From assembly GCA_035084275.1 (NCBI GenBank), contig CM068745.1:41788001-41852000 (forward strand): a stretch of DNA of 64,000 nucleotides, written 5' to 3'. The position numbers and the translations under genes are program-made. The notes below the pieces were generated by a model. That model saw only the letters and a list, made by a program, of their open reading frames with translations, made no database searches and was not told the origin of the DNA. Positions 7,405 through 37,099 of this stretch are shown in pieces. The stretch's first letter is position 1. Each line of letters opens with the position of its first letter. Source of the stretch: Hydrolagus colliei (taxonomy: Eukaryota).

Positions 7405-7426
7405 GAGAGAGAGAGAGAGAGAGAGA
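7405..7426. repeat. (GA)n microsatellite
   Basis: Direct reading. Confidence 0.9.
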
Positions 7427-9480: not shown

Positions 9481-9687
9481 GGTAAGGGCAATTTGATAGT
9501 TGATATTGGAATGCTGAAGGGTTTTTTCACCAATGGCAGAATGGGTGTAATGTGCTGAGAATCCAGAAACCGTCAACATTAGTCCACAAAATTCAGTGAT
9601 GGAAAAATTTGGTGAGGAGAATTCTCTAAACTAGCCTAACCAGACCACTTGGCCTGAGTGTGAGAATGAGTTGAAGTAATTTATATA

Positions 9688-10249: not shown

Positions 10250-10271
10250 TATATGTGTATTTTTTCTCTAG

Positions 10272-10625
10272 CTGTTTTAACTACGGGAAATGGAAATGCC
10301 ATGGAATATATACAAACACTGAGCAGCAATGTCACCTTGAATTGTTCAAAACCTTACATAAATCCAACGTTAATTGTATGGTACAAAAGTGATCTGTTTG
10401 GAGTAAAAGAATACAAGTGTATAATAATTCAGGATTGCTCATCAAATAGAATCCATACAAATTATACCACCAGAGTAACAATTCCAAATACAACTTGTAA
10501 TTTACCAAGTAAAGATTTTTATCTTCAGATTGAGTCTGCAGACTTGACTGATGAAGGGAATTACAAATGTGAAATTGCAACTCAAGATGGAACTTTTTCT
10601 GAAACCTTTTCGTTAACAGTCATAG
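10272..10625 (+). CDS. Orphan Ig V-set exon (copy A), paralogue of 36231-36584
   Basis: Same acceptor and donor, 354 nt, no stop or indel, 23 nt differences from copy B. No C2 or TM exon was found between 10.7 and 20.3 kb. Whether it is expressed is unknown. Confidence 0.75.
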
Positions 10626-11393
10626 GTAAGAATACTTGTGCTGGAATCTTCCCATTACCAATTTTACTACATATCACTTACAAATATAGTCAATTAACTT
10701 TACAGTATATTTTGTGTGAAGTGCTTTGAGGGGTAAATTATGAGATTCTATACTGAGGCTAGCTGGTTAAATGACACCACAAACTTCAATTTAGTGCCTT
10801 AACGTTTATTTCAAAAATTCACTTTGAATTTCAAAGTCAGTGTGATCACAGCCATGGGGAACTCAATGTCTTTAATTATAAAAAAGGTAGAAATTTAAAT
10901 GGAATTGTAGTAGTGCTAGAGCATTACACAACATGATTTTCATTTCGAATTTGTTAATCCTACCTGAGTTGTTTGTGGAAGCAACACTTGGCTATAGCTA
11001 ATGCCATGCACAGAAGACACATGCTATACAGGACAATAGCACGGATCACAAATGGCGATATCTCTGGAATCTATAAAAGATGGCACTAATTAGCTATTTT
11101 ATTGCATGTTTGCCATTTTAGGAACATTTTGATGAGAGATTTCTCTCTAAAAATATAGATATGCTTTTATTATTATAAAAAGAACTACAGCTATGTTTCA
11201 ATTCTTAGTTGCTTGCTGTATCTGCAAACTAATTTTTTGCGACTGGTGTACAATGACACCCAAATCCTTCTGAACACTAACACTATTTAATCTATCCCTT
11301 TCTTGAAAATAATCTGTTTTTCTATTTTTGCTACCTATTTGAATAACTTCATACTTCCCCACATTAAATTCCATCTGCCACCTACTTTACCCC

Positions 11394-12541
11394 AAACATG
11401 GGGTAAATTTCCACATGTATGCGGATGACACCCAACTGTACCTTTCCGCCTCATCCCTCAACCCCCAGACCATTGATGTTCTGACAGCATGTCTGTCCGA
11501 CATCGAGTCCTGGATGAGGGACAACTTCCTTCAATTGAACGTGAGCAAGACCGAGGCCCTCCTGATTGGCTCAAGCCAGCGCCTCCACACATCGGGCGCT
11601 GCCAGCCTCAACATCCAAGGCGATACTCTCCACCTCACAAAGCCAGTCAGGAACCTCGGCATCACGTTCGACCATAAACTTTCCTTCCTCCCCCACATCC
11701 GTGCCTTGACTGGCACCGCTTATTTCCACTTGCGCAACATTGCCAGGCTCCGCAATTATCTCACCCCACATGCTGCCGACACACTCGTGCGTGCAGCATA
11801 CATCACCTCACGGCTGGACTACGGAAACTCTCTCCTCGTCGGCCTCCCCAGCTCCTCCATTCACAGGCTGCAGGCCATCCAAAACTCTGCAGCCCGTGTA
11901 CTATCCCGCACCCGCCTCCATGACCACATAACCCCCACCCTCGCCCGTCTCCACTGGCTCCCCATCCTCCAGAGGATCAAGTTCAAGATCCTCGTCCTCA
12001 CCTTCAAGGCCTTACACGGCCTTGCCCCGCCTTATCTATCCGACTTACTCACCCCCTATAAGCCCACCCGGACCCTCCGTTCAGCAGGACTTGGCCTGCT
12101 CCAAGCCCCCCCGCCCGAACCTCCCCACCATCGGAGGCCGGGCCTTCAGTTTCTCTGCTCCCACCCTATGGAATTCCATCCCCCAATCCCTCTGCCTTGT
12201 TTCCTCCCTTTCCTCTTTCAAGGCCGGTTTGAAGAATTTCCTCTTCGACCGTGCCTTTTGTTCCCCACCGAACTTTTCAACCTCCACCTTACGGAATGCC
12301 ATCCCTCAATCCCTCCGTTTTGCCTCTTCCCTTTCCTCTTTCAAGGCCGATTTGAAGACTTTCCTCTTCGATCGTGCCTTTTGTTCCACCCCGAACTCTT
12401 TTACCTCCCCTTCGTGTTTCACCCCTTCCCAAACACTCTCCTCCCAGCTCGGGTCACACGCCTCTTGTTCAGCGCCTTGGGACGTCCTCCCGACGTGAAA
12501 GGCGCTCTATAAATGTAAATTGTTGTTGTTGTTGTTGTTGT
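11394..12541 (+). mobile_element. L2-clade LINE 3' fragment with internal ~123-bp duplication
   Basis: ORF begins [11 protein letters not shown], followed by the 3' stem-loop and (GTT)n tail. Confidence 0.95.
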
Positions 12542-14360
12542 TTACTTTCCAAATTGTTTCAAGAACAAATCAGATAGATTTCTGCTAGAAAATAATATTG
12601 AGTGAACAGTACTGTATATAGTTTGGGACATGACATGTCAAGCTACTGCCAGGTTGGTGGAAGGCTAATTGGATACACCTTGATGTTATTTCACATAGCA
12701 AATTCTTATGTTCTTATGTGACATTGCCAGAGTGTAGCAGAAATTTCAGCCACAGAGCAAACCAGTTCTTCCTGCTGTACCTTTGCCAACTACCAAGCCA
12801 GTTACTAAGCAACTGCCAGCTATGCAATGAAAGGTCATGAACTGCTGCCTTGACAAGCAAGTGAGGAAGTTGCTAAGCTGTATTATGCAATTATTTAACA
12901 TCAACTGGAGGCCTTGCTGGAGCAACAATGTCTACACCATGAACAAACAAAACACTGCTATATTTTACATTCGATTAAAAGACAGCTCTTTAACACCAAT
13001 GAAACAAAACCTCTGATATCATTTATTTTTCAACAGTTCCTCCACTTGCAGGCCAAGAGGCACCCAACACTGCAAACTGACAATACCAACATAGTGTGCA
13101 TTTACTATCCAACAACTTTCACTCAAATCGTCCATGACTACTGTATATGCAATTCACAGAAATGTTGGAATTGTAGCATTGCTTTGGAATATTTATAGGA
13201 ATATATGCTTTGTGGAGGACAAGCAGTTGAACACTTTAATTTCATGTTTCGCAAACTCTCTAATTCACAATGTAGTAGGTTCTCAGGTCCACTACTATCT
13301 AATGCTCCTTTCATAAAGTATGGCTCACATAGAACTCAGCTCCATGTACCACACAATCTGCAGCTGCTCTCAGTACTAAATGTAACTGTACCACAATTTT
13401 GAGCCCCTGATCAGAAGGCTTCTCAATAACCCCTCTCCCGCCCTGCCCCCTACACATATATCCCCATCACATCCCACATCAGGAACACCATTGCTTATTT
13501 TATGCATATGTTATTCCAAGTACTGTACTCAGGAAGACTTTCTATTCAATAATTCGCCATTGAGGAGCTATGTGATGTGCATAACAACAACTTATTAAAA
13601 TGCACATTCTCACCTCTTTGTAAGATTGCATACTATCAAACTGATAAAGAGCTCACATGATTAATAAGGATATCTTGGCAGTTCTGAAGCAATGATTTTC
13701 TGGTTCACTTGGGAGGAGCACTCCAGTATTACACCTATAAACTCAAGGGTTTTATTGTTTATCACATTTCGCTCAACATAGTAATATTTGTGGTATGACG
13801 TTCGTAATCAATACAAGGAATGAATGGGTTAAGAAATTCTTCAACTTACTGTTTCTTAATTAGGCCCACCCTCACTAATGCTTGTTTGTGAAGAGCATAA
13901 TTTAGGTTACAGTGCTGTGTATTCACATGCCAACACTGCAAACTGACAGTGCATGGCAACTTATCCACATCGGAATGCAAAATTAGAGGGAGAGAAAGAG
14001 GGGTTGGCACAATGTGGTACAGTTCTACAGTGACAGAGTAACTAATGCATTGATCTTTTAGTGAGCAGTCAATTGTTTAGCCACAAACACACATGGCCCA
14101 TGGAATCCAATGTCTCATAGTGTGCAACAATGGTGTCTAATCATGTCCAATCCCTTTACATTTGTTTAGTTCTTTTGTACACCAACATTTTGACACATGA
14201 TGATGAAATAGGGTGTAGCCTGAGGCCATTCCACGCAAACTCACATTTTGATTGTCGAATCATATTTTTGAATTCACCCATCCAATCATCATTTCACACA
14301 TTTGAGGCCCCAAGGCTATTAAGGTTTTAATCTCAGTAATTTGGATTTCCTCTGATACCA

Positions 14361-15365
14361 TGAACAACAGCAACAAAATTATATTTGTATAGTGCCTTTC
14401 ACGTAATCTGGAGGACATTTCAAGGCGCTGGACATTCAGTGTTTCTGACCCGAGCTGGTGTTGGGTTCGAGGTAAGTAGAGGGAAAGGAGGGGAGGTAGG
14501 GTGAATGATGGGAACGTTGAAGAGAAGTATGGAACTCTGGAAATTGATGCTGCCAATGCCTGATGTGTGAAGGCTCTGGCGCGAGCCAATCAGAAGCGCC
14601 TCGGTCTTGTTCATGTTTAACTCTAGAAGGTTAGCTCTCATCTAGGACTTGATGTCTGATAGGCAGCAGGACAACAGTGGTCCTGGAATTGAGGGTAGAG
14701 GCAGAAAGATGGAGTTGGGTGTCATCCACATACATGTGGACGTTGAACCTGTGTCTGCGGATGATTTTACCAAGGGGGAACATATAGATATTGAAAAGTA
14801 GTGAGCCAAGGACAGAGCCTTAGGGGATACCACCGGTGACAGTGTTAGGGCTGGATGAGAAGCTGTTGGTGGAGACAAAGTGGACACCGTGAGAGAGATA
14901 AGAGTCGCATCCAGGCAAGGGCAGCTCCATGAAAGTTGAGCTGGGAGGAGAGGCGGTGAAGGAGGATAGATTGATCGATAGTGTTGACATCAGTGAGGTC
15001 AAGGAGGACAAATAAGCATAGAGAACCTGGATCACGGATGGTTAAAATGTCATTAGAGACTTTGACCAGGGCTGTCTCCGTGCTATGGGCAGCATGGAAG
15101 CCGGATTGGAGGGGTTCAAAGAGGGAATGGTGAGAAAGAAAGGAGTGAATCTGCAAAGTAACAACTCTTTCCAGTTCCTTGGAAAGGAATAGTAGGTTGG
15201 AGATGGGGCGATAACTGGAGAGTAGGAATGGGTCCAGGGAAAGTTTTTTTTAGGTGGATGAAGGGTGGATCACGAGGGAGAGGTAATGGGGGTTAGCAGT
15301 AGATTGGGTAGAGGTGGCTCATCGGATCCCCTCAATATTAGATTTGAGGAAGTCCAGCATCTCTT
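14361..15365 (-). mobile_element. Degraded L2 fragments
   Basis: Decayed RT motifs (LQSGF...STETALVKVSNDIL, NKTEALLIGS). Confidence 0.8.
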
Positions 15366-15709
15366 CATAAATACCAAGTGTGAAGAATTCAATTAAACAG
15401 TTAATTGTCCTTCCTTGACACCTTCACATCATAAAATCCTTTCAAGATCTCATCTAAGCCGATTGCAAGGTACCAAGCGTTCAATTAATCAGGACAATGT
15501 TAGGCTAGCTCAAAGCCACACATTTCTGAGCATGAATGTTGACTAATGGGTCTTCTCCTTAGAGTTGAGTCTTTTGTATCAACACAATGCTTGAGATAGA
15601 CAGTTTGATACCATTCTTCCAAACAAGGAAATTAATAACACCTATCCATCAAGGCTTCATCAAACTTATCCCAGAACCTAAAAACACAGGCCTCACTCCA
15701 TTTGGTTCT

Positions 15710-18632: not shown

Positions 18633-20794
18633 TCAAATTCTCGCTCTCACATTGCTTAAGTTCAATAAAGATTGTCTCAGTTCTGTTTCATACATTTAGG
18701 AGTTTCAAACAATAATTTTAATAAGGATTTTAAGCCTCTTCTTACCCATGTGACTGAAGCTGACAAATTTAACACAAAGTTTACTGCCTATTCACAGCAA
18801 TTCCAGTTTTGAACAAAAACTGATTATAGATTGCGTATCATGAATCCTCCAATCAAGATTTACGTCAGTACATTGAGCTCACAATTTAAGATGACACCCT
18901 GATCAGTTTGGGGGATTGTTGGATTGTTGGATGGTGGATGTGCCGTCCTTTGGAATGAGATATCAAACCAAGCTACAGTCTATTATTTAAAAACAGAACA
19001 GTTTCTCCGGGTGTCCTAGCCAACAATCATTCAGATACAAATGATCATTCACTTTATTCACTGGTAGTCCGGCACTAGCCTTGAAAAATATGCAGGCACT
19101 ATGACATGCAGTAAATCCTGTGAAAATCATTGAAACATTCTGATGATGTGTTAAATGTTATGGCAAGAATGAAAGATACTCGGACTTCAAGAACATCATT
19201 ATTATTATTGTTATTGTTAATACAGTATTGGGGGCAAGTTTGTACGTTCATAAATTTTTTAATGGTTATTATTGCCATACGCTAAGTATTAATCCTTTGT
19301 ATGAGACCAAAGTCCCAGGGCACAGTTTGCAAGGAGAAAAGAGTTTCTCTTGGTGTCCTGGCCACAGTTCCCAATAAAATTAACTTCATGGCTGTTTGTT
19401 ATGTTCACCCCAAAACACAGCAGTTCACAGTAAAATGCTGTGAAGGTCTTTGAGACATCTCGATGATGTGATAAGGAGTTGTATCAAATGGAAATGTTTG
19501 CTTATTTGATGGTGGGTGCTGATTGACGATAAAGACAGTATTTGCAATGGTTTGGTGTTTGACACCAAATAAACACTGGGTGGTAGCAAACCAGTCACAG
19601 AGTGATTTTCTGGACCAGCTTTTCTCTCAGATGATCAGCCGACATTTTGAGAATGTTTGGATTACATTCTATTGCATTATATTGTTGCTTGATATACATT
19701 TGATGAAGAAAGGCAAATTCATTTTTGCCATTTAGGGACATAAACTCAAATGGTGAAACAAATAGTCCTTCACTGGATCATGACTAAAAGTTAAATATTA
19801 TATAATAGTATCAAAGTAAACCATGCTCCAGGGGGCTACAATATATATTTTTAAATGCAGTGTGATCAGGATAGGGATTCAATTAAATGGGCCTGAGGGC
19901 TTTATTTATCCAAAGAAGAATGTTGTGAATTTGAAGTTTTCGTCCGGTCATTTGAGAAAGCAGCAGATGGAAGAAACTATTCTGGGAGAGGTATGCTGTC
20001 CTCTCGTGGTCAAGAAATGGTAAAGACTGAACCATTGCAAATTATGTCCTTGAGTTAATTAGCTGTTGTATTCATTACAACACTGTGATAATAATAATTC
20101 TTCAGTTCGATATAGTGCCTTATCATATCTTCTAGCTTTACAGAATATTATGTAGATTGAAAGAAAAGCCAAAAGTCGCTGGGAATACTCAGCAGCACAG
20201 GCAGCAAAATCATGGATTAAGAAAACAATCTTTTTTTTTGAAGGTATTATTATCCCGGAAAAGCAATCCCTCAAGCAATCTGCTAATCCACCTGAGTTAT
20301 TGCCAGGTAAACAGACTAAGGAAATTTGCCTAATGTGTTACCCTGCCTGGCAATCCAAAACCACGATCCTCTTATTTATGAGGCAAATACTCTAACCAAT
20401 ATGCTACAGAACTCCAGTAAATCTATATTTGTTGTTGTATAATTATAATTACATCAAACACTTAAGATGTCACAAATTGTATCCCATTATTGCCAGACTA
20501 CTAAAATAAGCATATAAAAGATCAAGTTGATGGGAGAGGAACAACAACCATTTGAATTACAGAATAATAAGTGGCCAAAACAAGAACTAAAACACGTACC
20601 TAGCAGCTCACCTCGGATTTGACCAATCAGTCTATCATATAGGCTATCACAAGATCACAAGATTGGTTTGAATAAGGAGGGATCTTTGGCCAGTTGATCT
20701 CATTGTTCCAGATTACAGTCCCTCCTTCATAACATAAAGTTATTTTTCAAACAAGTTCAGTGTCCTGACTTCAACCTTTCTGGAAACCTGTTCC

Positions 20795-21088
20795 AATAAT
20801 AATAATAATAATAATAATAATAAACCTTGCATTTGATATAGTGCTTTTCACATCTTCTAGAAGACTCAAAGCACTTCACAGAATATACTCTAAAGTAAAT
20901 TGAACATGTATTTGTGGGCAATATGCAGCTGCCAACTGCACAGTTTAAATTCTTTATTGATTTTTTGAGCAATTATCATCAGGCTTGTGGAGTAAGGAAA
21001 CTTGCCCAAGATATCGTCCTGCCTGGAATCAAACCCAAGTCTCTCGCTTGCAAGGCAAGTGCTCTAACCTCTGAACTACAGGACTCCA
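20795..21088 (-). mobile_element. tRNA-derived SINE, same family
   Basis: Head, body and tail are the reverse complement of 2585-2902. Confidence 0.88.
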
Positions 21089-23039
21089 CAACCATTAATT
21101 TCTTTCCTATTCTTCCTGGTGCAGTATCTGCAAGGATTATAGTCTCTGTCCTGAAAATGCCCTTTGCAACTCTAAATCTTGTGCCTACTGATGTACACCC
21201 TTCAGATTTACACCGAGGCATTTTGAAATATTCAATCCCATTAAGAATTTTATCCACCTCTAGGATATCCGCTCTAAAGCAACTTCTCTCAAGATTGGAG
21301 ACTCCTCAGTTGTCTAATCCAACATGAGGGATCATCCTAATTGCTCTCCTCTGCACTTCGTCCATCGATACTGGAAAGCAGACCAGAAATGTACATTTCC
21401 AACTGTCTGACAAATTGCAAGTTTGAAAATTCGAAACAGTTAAATATAAAAAATGGTGACTATATTCAAAGTAATTAAGGAAAAACTGACATTAAATATA
21501 ATCTTCTCATTAGGAATCAAATTGGATATGGGGAGAAGGGACGGGGGAGATTGTTTCAATCAATCAAGTATTGATTGAAACAATACTTTCAATCAACAAT
21601 CTTATATCATTGACTTAACTCTTTTGACTGGATAATAAGTGGTGTACTATATAACAATTTGCAACTACAAATAAATTCTGGTCGTTTCCTGACAGTTGAA
21701 GGCTTTGGTAACAAACTTGCTCTATCCAAAATGGTACCTGGTTTCACCAACAGTATCCAAAAGTTTAGTCTATCAACAAAAGATTAAAGGAGCAATTTCA
21801 TGCAATGCAGACACAACCTGTCTACTTACAAACAGTTATGCTCACTTCACTTCACCTAATAAGAATTCAGCACATACCTTAACGTAGTTGAGTGAAGATA
21901 TCCAATGCAGTGGTTGGTTCCTAATGAGATGACTATATTTGCATATCACTTTTTGACAATTGCTTTAAAAACAGTCAACTTTTTTTTATAAGTCCAAGTT
22001 CTGACTTACAAGATCCAAATTGCCAAATCAACTGAAGCTGTATGACCTTTGATTCGATCTGATTGTCTGGTGTATTTTTATTTTATTCTTCAGAAAACAA
22101 GACAACATTGTGAGTTTCCATCCTGTCTGATGGTTTGGGAATAAGCCTGCTCTATTCAAACTGGAGTCTAGTTACACAAGTATATTATTTGAAACCTCAT
22201 TCCTATATCAGTGGTTTGGGACGTCCTCACAATGTGAAAGGCACTCTATAAATATAATTTTGTTGTTGTATTTCAATGACAACTTACACTTATATTTTGC
22301 CCTTCACAAAGAAAAAAATGCATGTTGGAGTACTGTAGTTACTTTTGTGTAGTTAATAGGAATGAGGTTTCAGACAATGCGTTGGAAACATAGATAGAAT
22401 TGATGTCTATTGGAAAACAGTCATGTGCTGTTTAGTCGATACTTAAAATAGCTATGTAAAAAAACTCTATTTACTTCAGCCTTATTTGGCCCAAGTATTC
22501 CCTTTCAACACAAAAGCAAAAGATGAATATTTGATGTGGTTGGAAGCTGAACAAATTAAAATCAAGTTGAAGATGTGGAGATCTTGGTTACATTTCTGAA
22601 CTCTACATCCTGTGGTTTATCACTGAATTATACTGAACTATACACATTATTCTGTGGTTTGCTGAATAAGTAAATGTATGCAGCTGAATCAGTGACAGCC
22701 AATTTATTGTTGAATTCAGGTTTAACTTTAAAGATTGTTTACCGCAGTTCGTGAAAGAAATAGGCAGTTTCAAAGCTAGCTTCAAAATTCTAGACTGCAT
22801 TTAAGATTCTGACAAATTCTGTAAGCCCTAAAATACTTTCTTAATAGAATAAATCGACTCAGAATCTAGAATTTCTACTCACAGGATTTCAACCATTTTT
22901 TATTGTTGGGAATAGTGCATATAATTTATATTTCATTTTAACAGTAACACCCTTCCAACGTACAAAATTAGAGAACTTCTCAGCAATTTTGAGCTACTGT
23001 CCAATGGTAGAAATTATATATGATTATTGATATATACCG

Positions 23040-23218
23040 TGTTGTAGGCTTGCAACTCTGCATTGAATTCATTAAATGCTACAAACTTGTGTAGGTCGTA
23101 CTCATGTAATCTTAAAGGTCACATATCTACAACTTCCTCCCCACATTACCATCATGTAACCTAAACAAAGCCATTCTATTCAGAGTGCAGGAAGACACCA
23201 GAAATAGCTTGTAAGTAT
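23040..23218 (+). promoter_or_regulatory. Candidate promoter and non-coding first exon (copy B)
   Basis: Near-identical to 3000-3176. Contains an ETS/PU.1-type AACTTCCTC, CAGGAAG, an AAAGGTCA half-site, and a conserved donor GCTT|gtaagta at 23211. Confidence 0.45.
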
Positions 23219-24101
23219 TTCCCCATAGAAAAATATTTTTTCGTATAACCATTGCTTCACAATTAAAGTTGAGGATTTATAATCTGATGACATTTATGTC
23301 ATTAGACTCTTCTTAATATAACATTCCTCATGTGCAGGATATTGCAACAGTACAACTGAGACCTGTTCGTTTGTTCAGATTCTCAGTGAGATTCTCAGCC
23401 AGGATCAGATAGTTCGATAATACACTTGCCACATAGCCTCTGATATTAATTGCAGCCCATATTATGACTCCAGTGCAGTTTTTTGGGAGGGTTGCAAAGG
23501 TGCATTGTCAGAGATGCCATTCTTCAGATGAGCCATGAGACTACAACAACAAAATTACATTTTTAGAGCGGCTTTCACATCGGGAGGACTAAGTAAGATA
23601 AACTAAGAACTCATGTGCCTCTGCAGGTGGACATTGAATAATCTATGGCACTATTTGAATGGATTAAAAACTTAATTCACGACTGTTTGGGGGTCATTGA
23701 GTGCACAATTTGCTGCCATGTTTCACCCACGAAATATAGTTATTTCACTTTACAATTTATTCTGTGAAGTGCTTTGAGATAATACAAATATATCAAATGT
23801 AAGCATTGTTATTATTTGAAATGAGTGTAATGTTCACATTTATCACAAGCCTTATTAAGAATTTTTAATGTTACATTTACTATAATTAATTGTACTAACT
23901 AATAAACTAACAATTTGTTTGAAAAGAAAAAAGAAAGGAAAATTATTCAGTCTATTTAAATAAATCCAATAAGATTATGAAGTTTTTTTTCTAGAAAGTG
24001 GCTGTAACATGGTTTTTCAGCACAAATTTCCTAGTGTTGCTGAATTATAGTAACAGCTAGTACTGTAAGACTGTACAACTGAAGCTTTTTGTTTTTCACA
24101 G

Positions 24102-24225
24102 TGACCCTGATACATAATCTTCAATCAGTTTTGTGGACATTAAAGCAAAAACAAGATGAAGACAATACTGCTGGTGACCTGTTGCTGCTATCGCTGTATA
24201 TTTCACAAGTTATTGGACTAGGCTG
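24102..24225 (+). CDS. Candidate leader (signal peptide) exon of copy B, frame-disrupted as assembled
   Basis: Acceptor tttttgtttttcacag, donor CTG|gtaagg. ATG at 24156 gives MKTILLVT and runs to TAG 24219. The adjacent frame gives LLLLSLYISQVIGLG, so one extra base would produce a typical signal peptide. Confidence 0.5.
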
Positions 24226-24394
24226 GTAAGGAAATCCAGGAAGGCAAAAACATATGAATATATCGATCTAGACAAACCAGAACTGAAACTAAAGTAAAAA
24301 TGCGCAAGGTCAGTTTATTGTGAGAATACCAACCTGACAACCAGAGATTTTGGAAGGAAGCGAGTCAATTTATAAGCTTCTCTTCTAGCCCCCG

Positions 24395-25378
24395 CACTGT
24401 CACCTGTGGCATCCCCCAGGGCTCTGTCCTTGGCCTGTCACTTTTCAACATCTACATGCTCCCATTTGGTGACATCATCCGCAGACATGGGGTTAACTTC
24501 CACATGTATGCGGATGACACCCAACTCTATCTCTCTGCCTCCACCCTCGATTCCAGGACTACCACTGTCTTCGCAGAAGTGGATGTGGGGTACACCATTG
24601 TGCGTAATTGGCTGCCGTGTTTCTCCCACAAATATACACTCAATTCACTTTACAGTATATTCTGTGAAGGATTATTATTATTATTATTACTATTATTATT
24701 ATTATTATAACTCGCTCTGCCTTTCTCCATCTCCACAACATTTCCCGACTCCACCACTACCTCACCCCCAAAGTCACTGAAACCCTCATTCATGCCGTCA
24801 TTACATTCTGGCTTGATGATGCAAATGCTCTCCTTGTCGGCCTTCCCAATTCCTCCCTCCACAGGCTGCAGATAATCCAGAGGTCTGTGGTGCATATAGT
24901 CTACCGTTCCAAACTCTATGACCCCATCTCCCCCATCCTCGCCTGACTCCATTGGCTCCCCATCATTCAGAGGATCCAATTCAAGATCATAGTCCTCACA
25001 TTTAAAGCCCTCCACAACCTTGCCTCACCCTACATCCATGACCTCCTATCCCCTTACCAACCTGCCCGCCCCCTCCACTCTTCAGTCTCTGGCCTGCTCC
25101 ACATCCCCCGACCCATTCACCCCAACATTGGCAGGTGAGCCTTAGCTACTCTACCCCAAACCTCTGAAACTCCATCCCACAGTCCCTCCGCCTCGCATCC
25201 CATCTGGCCTCCTTCAAGTCCCGCCTCAAGACTCTCCTCTTCGATGGACCCATCGGCAACTCCTAATGTCCCCCTTCCCTCCCCCACCCTGTCCTCAGCT
25301 CGGGTCTGAAACAGTGACTATCCAGCGCCTTGGGACATACTCCTGACATGAAATGCAAGTGTAATTTTGTTGTTGTTA
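24395..25378 (+). mobile_element. Old L2 fragment with nested SINE 3' part (~24570-24708)
   Basis: [17 protein letters not shown] motif, interrupted by a SINE body and ATT tail. Confidence 0.85.
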
Positions 25379-25605
25379 TATCTGAGGTTAACTAAAAGCA
25401 CTGTAGTAATAATATATTGTATTTTTCATGGAGCAGTCAAAAAAACACAAAATGCAGCAGCCGATTTGTGCACAGAAACTTCCCACAAACATGCTTGAAA
25501 CAAATCATTAATTTTATTTGGGGAATTGTTCACCAGGATACTGGGAGACACTCCCATCAGCATGTTCTGATCTCAGTTGCTGACAGCATCATTAATCTCC
25601 ACCTC

Positions 25606-26470
25606 AACAACAATAACAACAACTTCGATTTATATAGTGCCCTCCATGCTGGACGGCGTCTCAGAGCGCTTCACAATAGCGGATCTCGAGACCGAGCCAG
25701 GGGCAGGGGTAGAAAGGTGACCAAAGGCACGGTCAAAGAGAAAGGTCTTCAGCTGGGACCTGAAACTGGGAAAAGAGGGGGCGAGGCAAAGGTAGTGAGG
25801 AAGGAAATTCCAGAGCCTCGGGGCATAGTGGCTGAAGGCACAGCCGCAGAGGGTGGAGCGGAGGATTTGGGAGATATGGAGGAGGCCAGATCCAGTGGAG
25901 CGAAGGCAATGGCAGCTGGTTTGAGGAGAGAGGAGGTCAGAGAGGTAGGGGGTGCAGAGGAGTGGAGTGATTTGAAAATAAGGGCGAGGATCTTGAAGTC
26001 GGGATTTGAAAACAAGGGTGAGGATCTTGAAGCCGTCCTCTCTGGGATAGGGAACCAGTGAGGTCTGGCAAGAACTGGGGTAATGGGGGAGCGAAGTTTG
26101 GTGCAGGTGAGTATACAGGCGGCAGAGTTTTGGATGAGTTGGACTTTATGGATTGTGGTGGAGGGAAGACCGGCGAGGAGGGCATTTGTATAGTCCAGCT
26201 GTGAGGTGACGAAGGCGTGGACCAGGGTTTCAGTGGCTTTTGGGGTGAGGTATTGCCAGAGACTGGCGATCCGTCGGAGGTGGAAAAAAGCGGTGCTGGT
26301 GAGGGACCGCATGTGGGGGAGGAAGGACAATTGGGGGTCGGACCTGGCGCCTAGGTTGTGCACGGGTTTGGAGAGTTTCAGGGGGAGACCGGGAAGGTGG
26401 AGGAGGTGAGAGCGATGTGAATGGAGACGTTTGACGAGAGCCAAAGAGTATGGCCTCCATCTCACCAAGC
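25606..26470 (-). mobile_element. L2-clade LINE 3' fragment (second subfamily), copy-B-specific
   Basis: Highly similar to 7920-8700, with a tail. Confidence 0.92.
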
Positions 26471-27154
26471 CAGTAGTAGCCTCTGCGTTTTGTTCAGCTC
26501 CCAACTGCCCTATAAACTGTACATCCATGCCTTGACCCATTCAGCTTCATCCCCCTCCACAACATAGCCTCCCTCTGACACAACATTGGGGTCCTGAGAT
26601 CCTCATCCATATTTTCATCATATCCAGGCTTGATTACGCTAACTTCATGCCCACCAGAAATTCCAAACTCCACAATCTGCAGATTATTGATAACAACAAA
26701 AACAACAACAGAATTACATTTGTATAGCGCCTTTCTGCAGTCCATATCCTCCCCACACCAACTCTGTGACACTATAACCTCTATCCTTGCCCTGCTCCAT
26801 TGGCTCACATCCCCCAGAGAATCGAGTTCCAGATCCTTGTTCTCACATTTAAAGCCCTCCCTATGAGTCAATTTGCCTCACCCCCTTCTCTTTCCTTCTG
26901 CAAGGTTTGTTTCAAGAACTTCCTCTTTGTCCTCGCCTTCAATCATATTCCCACACCCCCCCCTTCTCCTTTACCTCTCTTGAATTCAACCCCCAACTTG
27001 GGTGCAAACCCTCAACTGTCCAGCGGACATCCACCCGATGTGAAAGGTGCTATACACAACCATTTTGATGCTTGCATTCAATATGGAGTACTTTGCATTT
27101 ATCTAAACATTACACTAAACATAATTTGCCAATCATCAGCCAATGTATATTCAA

Positions 27155-27990
27155 CAACAACAACAAAATTATACTTGTATAGCGCCTTTCAAGTCAGAAG
27201 GACATCCTGAGGTGCTGGACAGTCACTGTTTCAGACCCGAGCTGGCTCTCAGGGGGAGGGAAGGTGGGGGATTAGAAGTTGCCGGTGAGACCATCGAACA
27301 GCAGAGTCTTGACGCGGGACTTGAAGGAGGCTAGGGAGGGGGCAAGGCGAAGGCACTGCGGAGTGGAGTTCCTGAGGGCAGAGGGCAAAAAAGGCTTATT
27401 TAGTAACAGCCCGCCAATGGTGGGGCGGAAGGGTCAGGGGACGAGGAGCAGGTTGGAGCCTTCTGAGCGGAGGGGCAGGCAGATTGATGAGGGGTTAGAA
27501 GGTCACAGATGTAGGGTGGGGTGAGGTTGTGGAGGGCTTTAAATGTGAGGACCAAGATCTTGAATTGGATCCTCTGGATGATGGGGAGCGATGAGGATGG
27601 GTGAGATGGGGTCACGGAGTTTGGAACGGTAGAGGACACGGGCTGCAGAATTCTGGATCCTCTGCAACCTGTGGAGGGAGGAATTGGGAAGGCTGACAAG
27701 CATTTGCATAGGAGCCGGGATGTAATGAAGTAATGAATGAGGGTTTCAGTGGCTTTGGGGTTGAGGTAATAATCCTTGCATTTTCATATAGTGCTTTTCA
27801 CATCTTCTAGACATCTCAAAGCGCTTCACAGAATATACTGTAAAGTGAATTGACTGTATATTTGCGAAACACGGCAGCCAATTACACACAGCAGTGTCCC
27901 ATAAACAGTCGTGGATTGAAATTAGTGGCAGAGTAAGGCAATATTGCGGAGAGGGGGAAAGGCAGAGCGAGTCATTGCTTGGATGTGGGG
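27155..27990 (-). mobile_element. Old L2 fragment with nested SINE (~27768-27920)
   Basis: IQRIQFKILVLTFKALH motif and L2 tail. Confidence 0.8.
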
Positions 27991-28854
27991 GAGGAAAAAC
28001 CATTGAGGGTGGAACAAGTCACCTAAGTTCTGTAGAGCACAGGCTTTCTTTATACCCCACTTTGCTGCCTAAAATAGCAGGACTTGCTTGCTTGTTGCGA
28101 TCCATAAAAGATAGCGTGGCCTGTGGGTTTGCTCACCATGTTTACATGTTAAAGCCTGAAGTATGCCATATTAGCAGCTTCTGCACTGCCAGTATCTAAA
28201 GTTAGTTACAAGACATGTATTGCTCAGTAGTTTAGTTTGGAAATTCAACACTGTGATGGGTTTCCATGTGTGCCAGACACTTGATGTTCCCCCCCAAAAT
28301 TAATCCATTCTCTGAAAATCTGAAAGTCCACAAAATACATCTGAAACATGATGTAACTTCCCCTAATATGCTAAGAAGGTTTCTCTCATTTAGAACAGGA
28401 AATCTACATTAGATCTGAGAACTGATGTAGGTTTCCTATCTGCTTCAGTAGCCATCTATGAAAAAGTACCGTTCTCTTCGAGTTTGAGTGATATCTACCA
28501 ATGAAAACAGTGAATGTTGAAATGGAGTCTTTGAAGGGAAGAATGTGGACAACTTTGCTTTTAAAAACCACCCTCATTACTTTTCTACTCCCAGGTAGGT
28601 TATGCTCACTTTTATCAACCTCATTTTATGAAATCCCAGTACTTTGGGATGTCCTCCCGATATGAAAAGTGCTATACAAGTGTAATTTTGTTGTTGTTGT
28701 TGTTTTAAGTGTCTCATATTTGATGGATTCAGCAGGGAGCCTCTTAATTTTTATTCGTTCCACTCCTGGTCTGCAAAATACTGAAGCTGCTTCTTTGTGC
28801 TATGTTGCACCTGTCCATTATTGCATTGAGTGTCTGTGTATGTTTGTTTTCTGC

Positions 28855-28855
28855 T

Positions 28856-28884
<29 letters not shown>
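28855..28884. repeat. (TG)n microsatellite
   Basis: Direct reading. Confidence 0.95.
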
Positions 28885-28886
<2 letters not shown>

Positions 28887-31800
28887 CGCAAAGTGATTAA
28901 GTTTATTGTTTGTGAAAACAAAAGTTATGCGCTGTAAAGATGTGTATTTATGTAAAATTGGTCATGTTTATTTTCACGGTCAACTTTTTGTCCAGTTAGT
29001 GATACTGAATACAGTAGTTTGTAAATGTTAAATGAACAAATTGAGCTTGAGAGTTAAAAATAATTGCACTGAAGCCATTTACATTTCTGATGTAATAGGC
29101 TGCTATCTCTGGCTTAGGTTGTTCTTCATAATCTTTTAAAATATGTGGGTTTGATGTCCACATCAGGAGTTCAGCTCACAGTATCGGCTGATACTCTGGT
29201 GCAGTGCAAGGGGAGTGCTGCATTACCAGATGATATGTTTAAACTAAGGTCCCAGTTTTAGATGTCCTCCTGAATTCAAAGGTTCTAAATCAAATGCAAC
29301 AATTATTTTTATTATTAATATGTCAATGTTTAATTGTAGTCTCATTTGTGGTATTTCCTAACATATTCCTCAGAAAGAAATATGTAATTTTCAAATTTAT
29401 CAGACATTGAATTGATTGGAGAATATATTCAATGTGAATTTGGGGGGGAATGAGAAATATAATAAAAAATATAGAGAAATGAATATAAAACTAATCCTGT
29501 CAACATTTTGCTGAGATATAATTTTTAATAAAATATATAAATCTAAATAAATAATTATTTCAAATCATATTTCAATTGATAACATTTGATACAATGCCTG
29601 AAGGTAAACGATGATGAAAAATCTTGATTTTATCTTTCAAATTTAAATAAATAAATTTACATTCAATACCTCATCTTATCTTATAGGCCAGATTCCTAGT
29701 CATTTTAGTGAGCTTTATTACTGTTTATAATCAATTAGAAAATAACCCAAAACAAAAGCAAAATAAATACAGAATAAAGTAGAGGCTTGCTATATTTACA
29801 AAATGTTGCAATACCATTCAAAATAGGCTTTTCTCAATAAAACATTGTGAATATGATCTTATGCCTTTAAGCATTTTCTTACGCCCGTAAAAATTCCAAT
29901 TGCTAATCTTTCAACGGCGTTAGGTTTCTATAAATTTTATCTCAATAACAAGCATTGGTTGGAAATCTTATAATTGGCTCATTCTGGTAGGGATTTATTG
30001 GTGCTGTATAGAGAGAATCCCTCTTTAGGTGATACCAGAAAAAAATGTTTAATTAATTCATGTGAGTTTGGATACAAACCTTGACCCAGAATGGCATAAA
30101 GTAAGAAATCTATTCGGGTGCAAAGCCTGAGAGAGAGGTCATAGATTGTTGGTGTGCAACCCCCTGATGGCTTAAGTTGGAGTATTAATTGATGAATACA
30201 AGGAAGCTCTCTTAGAGGCAGATAAGAGATTTGCTGGGAACAAAGGACTGATGGTAATTTCCTGTAGTTACATTGATTTGCAGGAAATATTTGCAGATAT
30301 TCATTGAGCATTATTCTTATTACTGTATCTGTAAACACATAGAAAATAAGTACACAGAAAAAAGACTTAAATTCTAGGTGTAGACCAGGCACTCACTCTT
30401 AGTCACGCTCTCTGAATCAGGCGGTTTTGGTGCAAGTCTCACATCGCTACTTTGAACTCATGTTCTTGACTTGACAGTCTTATATAATACTGAGAGAAGT
30501 GCTAAATTGAAGTATTGTGAAGTACTATCCTGTGAAGTTAACTAGATCATAAAATGCTTTTAAGTGCTATGAGATATCTCAATGACATGGAAAGGTTCTT
30601 TGAAACATTTCTTCCTGATGTGACAGACATTTATAAATGTAAATTTTATTAATTTTGCTATTTAGCTCTGCATAGATTAATTTCAATCTACCAGGAGGTT
30701 CATGTTAAAATAATATTCTGGCTTTACAGTAAGTGCAGCAATTGTTTAGGTCTATTTTTATCTTACAACCAAAATGTAGGTTTCTAAAAGGGCTTTGAAA
30801 AAGAACAATGGACTTTATAAAGAGAATACCAAAAAATGAGGCCACAGAAAGACAATGTGAAACTAGTTGCAAGTCAATGTAAAATTGCCACAGGTTTTGC
30901 TATGGGGAAGTGTGATTTTAGTTATACAGAAGCTCAGCAGCAGAAAAGATCGGCTGTATTACTTGGACCATTTTGCTTCTATGCAATTTCTTCCCGCTCT
31001 CCCTTATCCAGTTCAGGTTCATAATCTGCTGCTTTGAGACGATCTTCCAATATGAAAGGCATTAGAGTATATCAATGCAAATTATATTGTATTAATTGAC
31101 TCCAAAATGCTGATAATAGGAGACTGTTTTTCCTTTAATGATTGTATTTGTTTTAATATACAGTACTACAAAAATAAGTACACTCATTATAAGAAGGAAA
31201 GTACAATAAAGTCAATGTTTTCACCTCTCCCATAAATTTATAGATTAGTTCCTCAATTTGTAGGATTAGATTTACAATAATAATAATAATCCTTGAATTT
31301 GATATTGCGCTTTTCAAGTCTTCTAGACGTCTAAAAGCACTCCACAGAATAAAGTGAATTGACTGATATTTGTGGGTGAAATGCGGTAGCCAATTGCGCA
31401 CAGCAGTGACCCACAAACACTCGTGAATTGAAATGACCAATTTTATTATTGTGTTTTTTTTTGGAGGGATTATTATTATTAGGTGTGTGGAGTAAGGAAA
31501 TTTGCCCAAGGTTTCACTCTGACCTGCCTGGTCTAACATTAACATTTACAAGATTTATTTCATCAGCAAAATTGATACAGGTAAAGTGCCTTTAGATCAA
31601 ACAATAAAAAATTAAAATAAATAATTAAAAAGTATAATTTTAACAATGCTCACTACTTTCTTTGACAACTATTAAATAACATTTTTTTAAAATCATGTGT
31701 TCATACAATTTTAAACATTTACACATCCAATACAAAGAAAGATTCATTTATATATTTTTTAAATCCCTGCAGTTGTACTACTGTGTATAATGTTTTTGAA

Positions 31801-32094
31801 ACATTTGAAAACATTTGAAAACACAGGATTCACTGTGGTGTGAAAACTGTATACAGTATTTGGAGGGGACATCTTATTAAAGCAAATTTCATAGGCTTTC
31901 ACTATATGATCTGAAAATCATTATGACTAATATCTCAATCTAATGTGTAGATCATTTATAAAAAATACTATTCCTAAACTCCTCAACTAACATTAGGTAT
32001 ACTGTAGTATTTTTACTACAATTGCCATTGTGAAGTGTTACAAATGTGCTTTATAATTGCAAATTGGTGTTGTAGATCCAAATGAAGGCCTGTG

Positions 32095-32400
32095 TAATAA
32101 TAATAATAATAATAATACAGTACTTGCTTTGCTATAGCACTTTTCATGTCTTCTAGACGTCTCAAAGCGTTTGACAGAATATACTGTAACGTGAATTGAC
32201 TGTTTGTTTGTGGGCAAAACACAGCAGACAATTGAGCACAGCAGTGTCCCACGAACAATCGTAGATTAAGTGACCAAATTATTTTTGGAGGGATTATTAT
32301 TAGGCATGTGGAGTAAGAAAACTGGCCCAAGGTTTCACCCTGCCGGGAATCGAACTCTGGTCTCTCACTTGCGAGGCAAGTGCTAAGCTAAAGGATTCCA
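32095..32400 (-). mobile_element. tRNA-derived SINE, same family (a head-truncated copy lies at 31276-31531)
   Basis: Head, body and AAT tail. Confidence 0.85.
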
Positions 32401-33359
32401 TGTATGAACCTTATAGACTTAAAATATTTGTTCTTTGCAACTTCAGATCACTGAAACGTTTGCTTGAAATTCTACTTGCATTCCAATGTTGCAAAGACAC
32501 TTATTATATTCAAAGTGACCCCATTTAAAGTGTTCTCAAATAGAGTTGTGATGAACACCTACTCTTTATTTAGCCTGACACCACTGAGCACTGCAGTTTT
32601 TTTTAATCTGCTTTGAAGTCAAACTGTATCATGAACTTTCATTCTGATGGTTTGTGCTACTTTTTCATATAAAAAGGAGCAGTCTATAATGTAGCTAAAT
32701 GACAGTGCCAGCCTGGCTCAAATTGATAGGACTCTTATCTCTGAATCAGATGGCTGTGAGTTCAAGCCCCACTTCAGGACTTTAAGATTGTAGTCTACTC
32801 TGACACAGGAGTGCTGTATTTATCGAATCATAGAATTTTGCAGCACTGAAGCTGCCATTCGGCCCATCATGCCTGTACAATTAATGCGATTTTCTCGATT
32901 GTGAATTCAACTATACGTGAAGAAAAAAATGCATCACTTTTATGCATAACGCCCGTAAAAGTGGCGTAGCATTTAGTCTCAAAGCTGTTCATTGTTTTCT
33001 GATTCTTTTGTTCCCTATTTCTTCCTTGAAGTCTCCTCTTCAGGTCTTCTGTGTTAGCCCTTTCTACAGTGTCACTGTTCATTAACAGTTTATAGGTAAC
33101 TCAAATTTAAGGTTTGAATAGAGGCTTGTCTTATTAAAGTCGGCCATTCAGGGAAGTCTGTCGCATTAAGAGCCTTTCTTTTTCCTGTTCATTCCTTCTG
33201 TTTAGCAGAGCTATCAAGTTTCTGTTCTGTAACCACATTATTTTCAGGGTCTTTCTTGAACTTACTCTGACTGTCTTCACCTCACTTGGTTCCCACTTCT
33301 TACTTTCTCACTTTCTTACTTTCTCACTTCTCTGATTTTTCAATGTTCTTTGTCACTTT

Positions 33360-34025
33360 GTCCTCCCCCACATCCGGTCCCTCACCAGCACCGCTTTTTT
33401 CCAGCTCCGACAGATCCCCCTTCTCCAGCAATATCTCACCCCAAAAGCCGCTGAAACCCTGGTCCATGCCTTTGTCACCTCTCGGCTGGACTATTCCAAT
33501 GCCCTCCTCACCGGTCTGCCCTCCACCACAATCCATAAAATCCAACTCATTCAACTCTGCCACCCGCAATCTCATCTGCACCAAACTTCGCTCCCCGATT
33601 ACCCCAGTCCATGCCAGACTTCACTGGCTCCCTGTCCCAGAGGATCAATTTCAAGATCCCTTGTTTTCAAAGCCCTTCACTCCTCTGCAACCCCCTAGCT
33701 CTCCAACCTCCTCTCTCCTCAAACCAGCACCTATTGCCTTCGCTGCACTGGGTCTGGCCTCTTCCTTATCCGCCGAATCCTCCACCCCATCATCGACAGC
33801 CTTGCCTTCAGCAACTACGCCCCGAGGCTCTGGAACTCCCTTCCTCACTCCCTTCGCCTCTCCCCAGTTTTAGGTCTCAGCTAAAAACCTTTCTCTTCGA
33901 CCACGCCTTTGGTCACCTTTCTCCCCCCTTGTCCCTGGCTCGGGCCTCGGATCTGTTAGTGTGAAGCGCTCTGAGATGCCGTCCGACGTGGTGGGCGCTA
34001 TATAAATCAAAGTTATTGTTATTGT
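33360..34025 (+). mobile_element. L2-clade LINE 3' fragment (second subfamily)
   Basis: Reverse complement of the 7920 and 25606 copies, with a (GTT/ATT) tail. Confidence 0.9.
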
Positions 34026-34355
34026 TGATTTCTCATTATATTTCGCTATGTTCCAAATTTTTTTACCTTTCTCTTAACTTTTTCTGAGTGAAATCTGTAA
34101 TTAATATTCACTATATTTCTTGCTGTATTAGGCATTCTGTATCCCAGTTACTTATTCCTAGTTATCCGCTCAGCAAAGAAAACCTTCCCAGTATCTGAAA
34201 TTGCTTTTTGCATCTCTGAACCTTGGTTCACTTGCTCAAACATTTTGGTGCATGCTAAACTATTGTTCTGGATTTATATTCTCATTTTCATTAAAAATTT
34301 TATACACCTCTATGTGGTTGCCTCTGATTTGTTTCCTCAAAGGATAATAATAATA

Positions 34356-34564
34356 CAGTAAAAGCGCGTTTATCCGGCACCCTCAGGACCTGGCTAATGC
34401 CGGTTAAAGCGAGTGCCGGATATTCGGCCGAAAACATAATTTAAAAAATTAATCATATATTTTTCCGGATAAATTCTGGTTAATCGAATGCGGACCATTT
34501 TTTTCCGGTGCTGGTTATACGGAAGTTACGGTTGATTGGGTCACGGATAAACGGGCTTTTACTG
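34356..34564. mobile_element. 209-bp MITE of Tc1/mariner (Tigger/pogo-like) type
   Basis: 21-bp TIRs (cagtaaaagcgcgtttatccg; 20/21 match) flanked by TA on both sides. Confidence 0.88.
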
Positions 34565-35970
34565 TACAGTACTGGCTTTTGATATAACACCTTGTCACAT
34601 GATCTAGATATCTCAAAGCGCTTCACAGAATATATTGTAAAATGAATGGACTATATTTTGCAGGTGAAACTCGGCAACCAATTACACACAGAGAGTCTTG
34701 GATTGAGTAACCAAAATATTATTATTTTTCAAGGGATTATTAATCCCAGAAAAGCTATCTACCTTCGACTAACTAACAACTAGGTTCCTACTTAGGATTC
34801 CAATTCTCATCAGGATGTAAAATTATTAAATAAGAGTACACAGACACACTCAGAGAGGTTTTATAATCAACATTTTATCTTAGTAATTGGAAGTATTATA
34901 CATTTCAATACAAATCATCATTTGGTTAGTTCTATAAGAGCAGAACTGATCAAGAATTCAATGGTCCTGCACACTTGCAGTATGTGGAATATGTAGTTAA
35001 TTTAAGAACAGGTACCAGCATATGAGAGAAAAAGAGGAAGAGAGAGAAAAAGTACAAGACTGAGTAATAAAGTGCAAGAGAACTCAAGGGAGAAAATGTG
35101 TTTGAGGGAGGGAGAGAGAGAGAGAAAATATGTGGAGAAGAGACCATGCATATCAAAAATGCAAGGATTTGCTAACAAGAGAGGTGGATGCTTATTTTGG
35201 AAGCACAGGTTTGTGGGGTTATGGGGAGAGAGGCGGGGAGTGGGATTGACCTTGAAATAGCTCTTTTCAAAGAGCAGGAACAGACTCGATGAGCCAAATT
35301 ACCTCCTTTTGTGCTCAAAAATTCTATGATTCTATGATTATTCTTATTATGGATCTTGAAACTACTATCAGAATTGAGTAGAATACACCAAACCGTATAT
35401 GTAGAAGGACTGGAGTTAGGAATAATAAAGAAAACGTAATCAACTCAATGTGAGAATTGTTGGGGAAGGAGTATCACCCTCTTCATTTCTGTTATATAGG
35501 GTGGGGTGGAATCTTAACAAAAAGCAGTTTCATGCAGAATTGTGACAAAGGCTGGTGAAGGTTGGGAAGCGCTGGGGCTAAGGGTGATTTGATGGTTCAT
35601 ATTGGAATACTGAAGAGTTTTTTCACCAATGGTAGAATAAACGAAGGTGCTGTCTTGTGCTGAGAATCAATATACTGTACAGTCAACAATGACGCACAAA
35701 ATTCAGGGTTGAAGAGTTTGTCTAATCATTCCTCACAGCTCAATCCTCCAACACACACTTTTGTTCCTTGCTGCTTTTCTCTGCACAATCACTGGGGCCA
35801 GGGCAACCCCCTTAAACCATGGTGAGGAGAATTGTATTCCATTCTCTAAACTTGACCTGACCAGAGCACTTGACCTGCATGTGAGTATGAATTGAAGAAA
35901 TTTAAGATCATTAATATCTTAAATTAAGATGATTAATTTAAGTAATTGAAGTAAATAAGATCATTGATAT

Positions 35971-36208
35971 ACGTCCTCCCAAATGCACATGCGCATGGGG
36001 CCAGCCAGCCGAGGAATCATCATACTTAGTCAGGAGCTGCCGGCATCCTCCCAAATGTGCCGGCATCCTCCCAAATGCGCTGGCTGGCGGGGCCAGCCAG
36101 CGTGTATACGCAAATTTTACTCGCGCTACGCAAAAAACTGCCGCATTTATTTTTCCGCGTTTAGGCGAATCCATATTTAAGAAAGTCACCTTCAGCAAGG
36201 GTTGACTG
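35971..36208. mobile_element. Right half of the same MITE upstream of V exon B
   Basis: Aligns to 10073-10249 and ends in caagggttgactg|TA. Confidence 0.65.
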
Positions 36209-36230
36209 TATATGTTTATTTTTTCTCTAG

Positions 36231-36584
36231 GTGTTTTAACTACGGAAAATGGAAATGCCACAGAATATATACGAACACTGAGCAGCAATGTCATCTTGAA
36301 TTGTTCAAAACCTCACATAAATCCAACGTTAATTGTATGGTACAAAAGTGATCTGTTTGAAGAGAAAGAATACAAGCAAATAATAAGTCAGGATTGCTCA
36401 TCAAATAGAATCCAAACAAATTATAGCACCAAAGTAACTATTCTAAATACAACTTGTAATTTACCAAGTAAAGATTTTTATCTTCAGATTGAGTCTGTAG
36501 ACTTGACTGATGAAGGGAATTACAAATGTGAAATTGCAGCTCGAGATGGAACCTTTTCTGAAACCTTTTCGTTAACAGTCATAG
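36231..36584 (+). CDS. Ig V-set exon of CD200-receptor-like type I membrane protein (copy B)
   Basis: Acceptor ttttttctctag at 36219-36230, donor G|gtaaga, 354 nt, phase 1-1, open. Encodes LNC...IVWYK...YLQIESVDLTDEGNYKCEIAARDGTFSETFSLTVI (V-set B-Cys, C-Trp, D-x-G-x-Y-x-C). The family call rests on recalled similarity to CD200R (YRC...TPDGNF) and the V-C2-TM layout; nectin/CD200-type relatives are not excluded. Confidence 0.9.
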
Positions 36585-37099
36585 GTAAGAATACTTGTAC
36601 TGGAATCTTCCCATTACCAATTTTGTTTCATCCTTTGTAGAATAGATGCACTGATATTGTAAGTTTAAATAATTTATAGTAAGTGTATCTAAATCTGGGA
36701 TGGGTGGGGTGTGCGGGTATTAAAATGTGTCGAAGATGATGATTATCAATGATCAAACCTGTAATAATATGATGGAATTTTTGTTACTAATTATTGACTT
36801 GTTTCAGATTAGAATGTCCCTCTCGATTATATGAGGGTTTGCAGTGTAGGGCCTTTTGCATTTTATGGGCTACTTATCTATCAGATCAGAGATAGCACCG
36901 GAATGCTGATTTACAGGATACAGGCTAAAAGGTCTAGAATTTTGATCTTAAATCAGGCATTTGTTGTTGTTGTTCTTGTTGTAAATCAGACATCCACAAT
37001 CAACAGAAGTTCGATTTTTTGACATCTGGCTTTGGCGTGAATGGTTATCACTCTTATCATTTTAAGAAAACTTATGTTTTGTTGCGAACTTTTTTTTAG

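Follow-up and report, generated by a model that had tools for sequence, protein, structure and literature searches.

The 64,000-nt window of Hydrolagus colliei DNA analyzed here (contig CM068745.1), the stretch that all window-wide searches covered, points to an immune-receptor locus that was duplicated in tandem and has partly decayed, with one immunoglobulin (Ig) V exon homogenized with its functional neighbor. The two exons concerned are (i) V_A, an orphan V-set Ig exon, and (ii) V_B, the V exon of an intact CD200R-like gene designated gene B. On balance, V_A is probably a pseudogene exon that was kept similar to functional V_B by gene conversion and that has since diverged in a near-neutral fashion. 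A preliminary description of this DNA had placed diversifying selection on top of conversion and likened the pair to pathogen-driven paired receptors. The base composition of the window, with a GC content of 41% and a CpG observed/expected ratio of 0.39, is that of vertebrate DNA rich in transposable elements.

V_A and V_B align without gaps over 354 nt and are 93.5% identical (Table 1). Each acceptor combines a polypyrimidine tract with AG, both donors read GTAAG, and both exons encode V-set Ig domains (Pfam PF07686, 4e-9 and 5e-8). The 23 nucleotide differences comprise 16 transitions and 7 transversions and are spread over 18 full codons as well as the 5′ split codon. Of these codons, 17 alter the residue, and two Thr codons (ACA/ACT and ACT/ACC) carry only silent differences, which reproduces exactly the counts in the preliminary description (23 of 354 nt, 19 codons, 17 changing, and 2 silent). 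Its figures for the surroundings, ~12% for the intron and ~15% for more distant sequence, are likewise borne out: 20 sites differ in the 170 bp upstream of the V exons (11.8%), and 574 of 3588 aligned sites differ in the distal colinear flanks (16.0%, 14 blocks). The two copies also have unlike N-glycosylation sequons, namely NAM vs NAT at residues 8-10 (10301-10303) and NVT vs NVI at residues 19-21 (10334-10336), and V_A carries an extra, presumably unpaired, Cys in KEYKCIII (10418-10420).

The mostly-replacement pattern is genuine, yet it is no different from what unconstrained mutation would yield. The exon holds about 74 synonymous and 277 non-synonymous sites; because ~79% of random hits would thus be non-synonymous, a majority of non-synonymous differences is the neutral expectation. 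The Nei–Gojobori method (NG86) gives Sd = 3.8, Nd = 18.2, dS = 0.054, dN = 0.069, and a dN/dS ratio (omega) of 1.27 (one-sided Fisher p = 0.49), and even the count most favorable to selection (21N/2S) yields p = 0.10. Pairwise GY94 likelihood under three codon-frequency models returns omega = 1.9-2.3 with kappa about 6; a likelihood-ratio test (LRT) against omega = 1 gives p = 0.16-0.29, and omega ≤0.5 is rejected (2ΔlnL 5.5-7.6). Neutral simulation of exon substitutions, conditioned on the absence of a stop codon, predicts 15-17 amino-acid-changing codons, with P(16 or more) = 0.48-0.76, and 4.4-6.1 silent codons, with P(2 or fewer) = 0.04-0.15. Relative to the neutral flank divergence (0.18), dN (0.069) is low rather than high. 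Ordinary purifying selection is excluded by these data and positive selection is not demonstrated.

Diversifying selection on the V exons, as proposed in the preliminary description, is not supported: omega is indistinguishable from 1 in both types of test, and the replacements are not significantly clustered. The motif pairs on which that proposal leaned, FGVKEYKCIII/FEEKEYKQIIS and ATQDG/AARDG, are both present in frame on the + strand. In an AlphaFold model, the first pair falls on the C-C′ loop and the C′ strand, and the second on the F-G turn. However, the clustering there does not exceed chance, with four replacements in an 11-residue window (scan P = 0.79). Adjacent differences are enriched across exon and intron (11 vs 3.8 expected, P < 0.001, 10102-10672 vs 36061-36631), which points to multi-nucleotide mutation or micro-conversion. 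Events of this kind inflate the selection signals of codon models. Examples include TGT/CAA at 10418-10420 and a triple difference at 10234-10236.

Gene conversion of the V block is moderately supported. Within the high-identity block, 47 of 571 sites differ (8.2%) compared to 574 of 3588 in the distal flanks (16.0%, p = 4e-7), and the leader exons of the same units differ at 16.4%. The block contains no indels, with about 5.9 expected from the 72 events per 574 flank mismatches. Sites in CpG context differ in 6 of 32 cases (19%) inside the block vs 47 of 87 (54%) distally (p = 7e-4). Divergence also follows a gradient, falling from 12% at -170..-41 to 2.5% at +1..+40 (1 difference in 40 bp). 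Synonymous sites of the exon (4 of 74 differing) lie below the distal flanks (p = 0.009; non-CpG 0.019) and do not depart significantly from the adjacent intron (p = 0.18-0.33). Neutral decay, for which an omega near 1 and an exon dS equal to flank divergence had been named as signs, is therefore seen in the first respect but not in the second (p = 0.009-0.019). Conversion acts on all sites rather than on silent ones alone, and dS and dN are both low when set against the flanks.

Homogenization of at most about 570 bp at a later date would explain why the exon of a dead copy is still intact. With about 11-12 substitutions on its lineage, the probability that V_A acquires no stop is 0.57-0.68 and that it acquires no indel is about 0.24, which makes its intact open reading frame (ORF) unsurprising under neutrality. 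A CpG-rich patch (observed/expected 1.3-1.5 vs 0.39 window-wide) adjoins both V acceptors on their upstream side (10102-10271 and 36061-36230), with short direct repeats (TCCTCCCAAATG...) at its 5′ edge. The patch could act as a regulatory element with low methylation, or it could be of recent origin, and an Rfam search with it gave no match.

As the anatomy of the locus shows, the duplicate that contains V_A is truncated and rearranged, which leaves V_A as an orphan exon. The aligned flanks of the two duplicated units are 16.0% diverged and contain 72 indel events. The leader homologue of copy A sits in a clean local inversion and differs from its counterpart in gene B at 12 of 73 nt (16.4%; codon positions 5/3/4). 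It retains an ORF and a GT donor and could serve a minus-strand gene to the left of the window. On the downstream side, homology to copy B ends at about 10666, ~40 bp past V_A, where sequence resembling a short interspersed element (SINE) begins. Comparison of the region downstream of V_A with the V_B-C2 intron, the C2 exon, and beyond recovers only transposable-element matches and an inverted relic of the transmembrane exon. This relic lies 340 bp downstream of V_A, and a 6-nt deletion and a 1-nt insertion produce a stop in its phase-1 reading frame. Its divergence (about 28%) exceeds that of the duplicated flanks, and it may derive from an older, otherwise vanished gene copy. A Lys in the relic (LAIAKCCF) was considered as a hallmark of an activating receptor and rejected, since CD200 receptor 2 (CD200R2) of Callorhinchus milii has LAKCFF together with a tyrosine tail.

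A tblastn search (E up to 10) recovers neither a third V exon nor a second C2 exon from the window, which also lacks a tail exon for copy A, a same-strand leader upstream of V_A, and a second signaling module. Gene B is the only complete receptor gene in the window, and V_A lies upstream of its ATG-bearing leader exon. With an inverted leader, a frameshifted transmembrane relic, and neither C2 nor tail exon, copy A does not provide the second receptor gene that the paired-receptor framing presupposes, and V_A itself is presumably nonfunctional.

The sequence of events that we infer, together with the direction of conversion, would comprise four steps: (i) an old segmental duplication (flank K about 0.18) copied the leader-intron-V part; (ii) copy A lost, or never had, the C2, transmembrane, and tail exons, and its leader was inverted; (iii) at a later time, V_B and V_A underwent non-allelic gene conversion, which reset at most about 570 bp around the V exon, for which K is now about 0.07-0.10; and (iv) the 23 exon differences would have arisen after conversion, essentially without constraint at the protein level (omega about 1-2). 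An unconstrained pseudo-exon paired with the fast-evolving V domain of a receptor would yield exon differences such as these.

Several observations weigh against this account. The codon-position split of the 23 differences is 3/14/6, a post hoc contrast (chi-square p = 0.015; simulation P about 0.005), and the second-position excess, which pure neutrality does not predict, is common to both lineages. It persists among single-nucleotide events (2/11/3) in a hand tally rather than a tool result. Polarization, made at the protein level only with C. milii CD200R2 (P0171) as the outgroup, assigns 7 derived replacements to A and 8 to B, a split with P = 0.01 if omega_B = 0.3. Functional V_B hence changes at the same pace as the presumed pseudogene V_A, so that either V_B is nearly unconstrained, or it is adaptively evolving, or the polarization is blurred by patchy conversion. 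Core strands B, C, E, F, and G hold only 2 of the 16 variable residues (P = 0.03). This scarcity hints at residual constraint, or it may reflect later conversion toward the 3′ end of the tract, and avoidance of the core strands is also what relaxed purifying selection would produce. With respect to conversion, the contrast between intron-only sites of the block (24 of 217, 11.1%) and the distal flanks is borderline at p about 0.05 (p = 0.054; non-CpG p = 0.055), and a changepoint test for a sharp tract boundary within the 571-bp block is not significant (p = 0.10). Finally, a run of 280 N at 7097-7376 inside unit 1 adds some uncertainty to the assembly of copy A; the inversion and truncation could be assembly errors, and V_A may be used by a transcript starting to the left of the window.

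Part of this evidence would fit a locus in which V_A and V_B both encode working ligand-binding domains of paired CD200R-type receptors, kept alike by conversion and shaped by pathogen-driven selection on the GFCC′ face. This explanation is unlikely. The variable residues fall in the N-terminus/A strand, BC loop, CC′ loop, C′, C″, C″-D, and FG turn, 9 of 16 being located in the CC′ loop, C′, C″, or FG turn, and variable site 104 falls opposite P110, a contact residue of mouse CD200R, in the alignment. Omega point estimates exceed 1 (1.27 to 2.3) and values ≤0.5 are rejected, the excess second-position changes are often radical, replacement counts are equal on both lineages, and the core strands are spared, all of which selection on paired receptors would accommodate. 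CD200R has, moreover, been reported as rapidly evolving under presumed pathogen pressure (PMC3664923). Nevertheless, omega is never significantly above 1 (p = 0.10-0.49), the replacements cluster no more than by chance, and the lineage of the scrambled copy accounts for half of the second-position changes. The multi-nucleotide differences, a known source of false positives, are enriched in the intron as well as in the exon, and V_A has neither a usable leader, C2, transmembrane, or tail exon nor an activating-type partner in the window. If true, the paired-receptor interpretation would make this an early-vertebrate case of pathogen-driven paired-receptor evolution in the CD200R family.

It is also improbable that conversion played no part and that purifying selection has acted on both V exons and their splice-proximal intron ever since one old duplication, with sampling noise or constraint on exonic splicing signals accounting for the low dS. 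The lack of a significant difference between exon synonymous sites and the adjacent intron (p = 0.18-0.33), the borderline intron-only contrast, the non-significant changepoint, and the invariance of core strands E, F, and G are compatible with such a history. Purifying selection, however, predicts an omega well below 1, and omega ≤0.5 is rejected. The preservation of intronic CpG sites (6 of 32 vs 47 of 87 differing), the absence of intronic indels, and the single difference in the 40 bp past the donor are left unexplained, and the leader exon of the same units has diverged at the full flank rate.

A working role for V_A of another kind is quite unlikely, be it as a further or alternative V exon in a transcript initiated upstream of the window (e.g., V_A-V_B-C2) or as a pseudo-V donor for V_B. 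The splice sites and the ORF of V_A are intact, and the exon precedes gene B on the + strand; both exons are of phase 1-1, so V_A-V_B-C2 would stay in frame. Multi-unit V-C2 relatives are known, such as Polyodon protein P0010, and the CpG-rich 170-bp patch is conserved before both V exons. The ATG leader of gene B nonetheless lies downstream of V_A, with no same-strand leader upstream in the window, the intactness of V_A is expected by chance at the present divergence, and the databases searched contain no annotated protein with either V exon. Least credible is the retention of V_A as a germline pseudo-V cassette or alternative V exon that swaps short patches with V_B by conversion and in this way provides the receptor with ready variation at its CC′/FG ligand face. 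If true, this would give a holocephalan CD200R-like innate receptor a germline counterpart of pseudo-V donor systems and would turn the second-position excess, multi-nucleotide changes, and equal replacement rates into footprints of selection on patchwise exchange.

Gene B, the functional partner in the favored reading of V_A as a converted pseudogene exon, consists of five exons on the + strand (28522-40487) joined by canonical AG/GT sites with consistent phases. Its coding sequence of 924 nt specifies 307 aa, and the protein C-terminus reads ...FIHLENIVYDSLQQHRQREL. The ends of the gene were located with full-length C. milii CD200 receptor 2 (XP_007901225.1) as the guide, while a de novo leader-exon scan by hydrophobicity was uninformative. 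The C. milii UniProt models P0001-P0003 were tried as guides for the gene ends and rejected, since their N- and C-termini are intron, SINE, or transposable-element read-through. For example, their ...CKYIYNKYYITDVCC corresponds to the intron after the C2 exon in the window; RefSeq XP_007901225.1 is the coherent model.

In the databases searched, there is no protein identical or nearly identical to that of gene B, which thus appears to be unannotated there. The nearest database proteins are C. milii entries with 66-71% identity, and C. milii CD200 receptor 2 shares 65-76% identity with gene B per exon. A full-library search adds shark, ray, reptile, and teleost relatives, which NCBI lists under names such as “CD200 receptor 1-B-like.”

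Gene B is most likely a member of the CD200R family, a placement on which its fold, its closest relatives, and its architecture agree, as judged from sequence comparison and a structural model. Its ectodomain comprises an N-terminal V-set followed by a C2-set domain, with Pfam V-set and C2-set_2 both above cut-offs, and the AlphaFold model (pLDDT, a predicted confidence score, of 85.5) has two beta-sandwich domains. The best solved-structure match of the joined V_B and C2 exons is CD200R1 (4bfg, 3.2e-12, phmmer), and the top Foldseek match of the model is mouse CD200RLa (4bfe, E = 2.8e-15, TM-score 0.77/0.85); nectin-1/3 score nearly as well as the CD200R structures, and the margin is small. 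A single transmembrane segment and a short tail with a tyrosine motif would also fit the CD200R family, and the transmembrane exon and ENIVYDSL tail have conserved counterparts in CD200R-like proteins of shark, ray, and C. milii. In the F-G region, CEIAARDGTF is similar to mouse CETVTPEGNF. Both V exons, like P0171, further carry an extra pair of V-domain cysteines, Cys55 and Cys75, which may correspond to the additional intrasheet disulfide of CD200R V domains (C′ strand to C″-D loop); Cys55 lines up with the C′ Cys of 4bfe, and the second Cys has no exact alignment.

Gene B differs from the mammalian proteins in several respects. It is only 20-26% identical to mammalian CD200R structures, and its C-C′ hairpin is about 7 residues longer. 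A D-E disulfide has been described in the C2 domain of mouse CD200R (PMC3664923). The C2 domain of gene B lacks it, having B- and F-strand cysteines plus one N-terminal Cys and none in D/E. The tail motif N-I-V-Y (ENIVYDSL) is without the Pro of the NPxY motif of inhibitory mammalian CD200R1, and, unlike the mammalian family with CD200R1 and CD200RLa-e, gene B has no activating partner gene in the window. A literature search for CD200R in elephant shark found no paper.

Table 1. Positions of the exons, relics, and duplicated segments in the window
Feature	Positions	Strand	Description
V_A	10272..10625	+	Orphan V-set Ig exon of 354 nt (phase 1-1) with an intact ORF and intact AG/GTAAG splice sites
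V_B	36231..36584	+	V exon of intact CD200R-like gene B; 354 nt, phase 1-1, AG/GTAAG
High-identity block around V_A	10102..10672	+	Ungapped, putative gene-conversion tract; pairs with 36061-36631
High-identity block around V_B	36061..36631	+	Partner of the block around V_A
Duplicated unit 1	44..10672	+	Colinear with 20297-36631 except transposable-element indels and one inversion
Duplicated unit 2	20297..36631	+	Holds L_B and V_B
Local inversion in unit 1	4194..5892	-	Clean; contains L_A; vs 26478-28974 of unit 2
L_A	4715..4787	-	Leader homologue of copy A (MESLKRRLWTILVLTTTLIMLLLP-G); strand opposite to V_A
Transmembrane-exon relic	10964..11070	-	Inverted, beside V_A; about 72% identical to TM_B region
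L_B	28522..28594	+	Gene B leader exon (MESLKGRMWTTLLLKTTLITFLLP-G) with donor GTAGGT
C2_B	37100..37369	+	C2-set Ig exon of gene B
TM_B	37909..38020	+	Gene B exon for stalk and transmembrane segment (LPVVLGSLCLLCFALILAMCFFHKQL)
Last exon of gene B	40373..40487	+	Cytoplasmic tail with ENIVYDSL, then stop TGA

The window also contains copies of a retrotransposon of the kind without long terminal repeats (non-LTR), which carry long reverse-transcriptase-like ORFs with a YADDTQLY motif (15713-18289, 43457-46033, 11343-12509, and 8200-9320). One of these ORFs spans 793 aa (15753-18131, minus strand), and the copies at 15.7-18.3 kb and 43.5-46.0 kb are 88% identical.

The locus documents an intact, apparently unannotated CD200R-like gene in a holocephalan genome. 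It further provides a worked example in which a preponderance of non-synonymous differences equals the neutral expectation, and in which the dN/dS of paralogues has to be read along with gene anatomy. Copy A resembles decaying tandem duplicates of the Ig superfamily in its inverted leader, missing downstream exons, frameshifted transmembrane relic, transposable-element-rich setting, and omega near 1. Unlike typical relic exons of this superfamily, its V exon is intact and 93.5% identical to a functional neighbor, a state that needs recent homogenization or some constraint.

Exon-restricted conversion in paired immune receptors is exemplified by SIGLEC11 with the SIGLEC16 pseudogene. Concerted evolution of the CEACAM1/CEACAM3 type is likewise restricted to the V/N-domain exon (PMC7042247, PMC5112662). 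V-exon-restricted conversion between an immune receptor and a neighboring paralogue or pseudogene is therefore already known, and this locus is another instance, its selective component being unproven. Conversion in CEACAM and SIGLEC11/16 was shown with several sequences and species, and with the partners or the converted gene expressed, as opposed to the two genomic sequences from one locus here. As in both of those systems, a short tract over the ligand-binding Ig exon is far more similar than the surrounding paralogous DNA, and one of the conversion partners may be a pseudogene.

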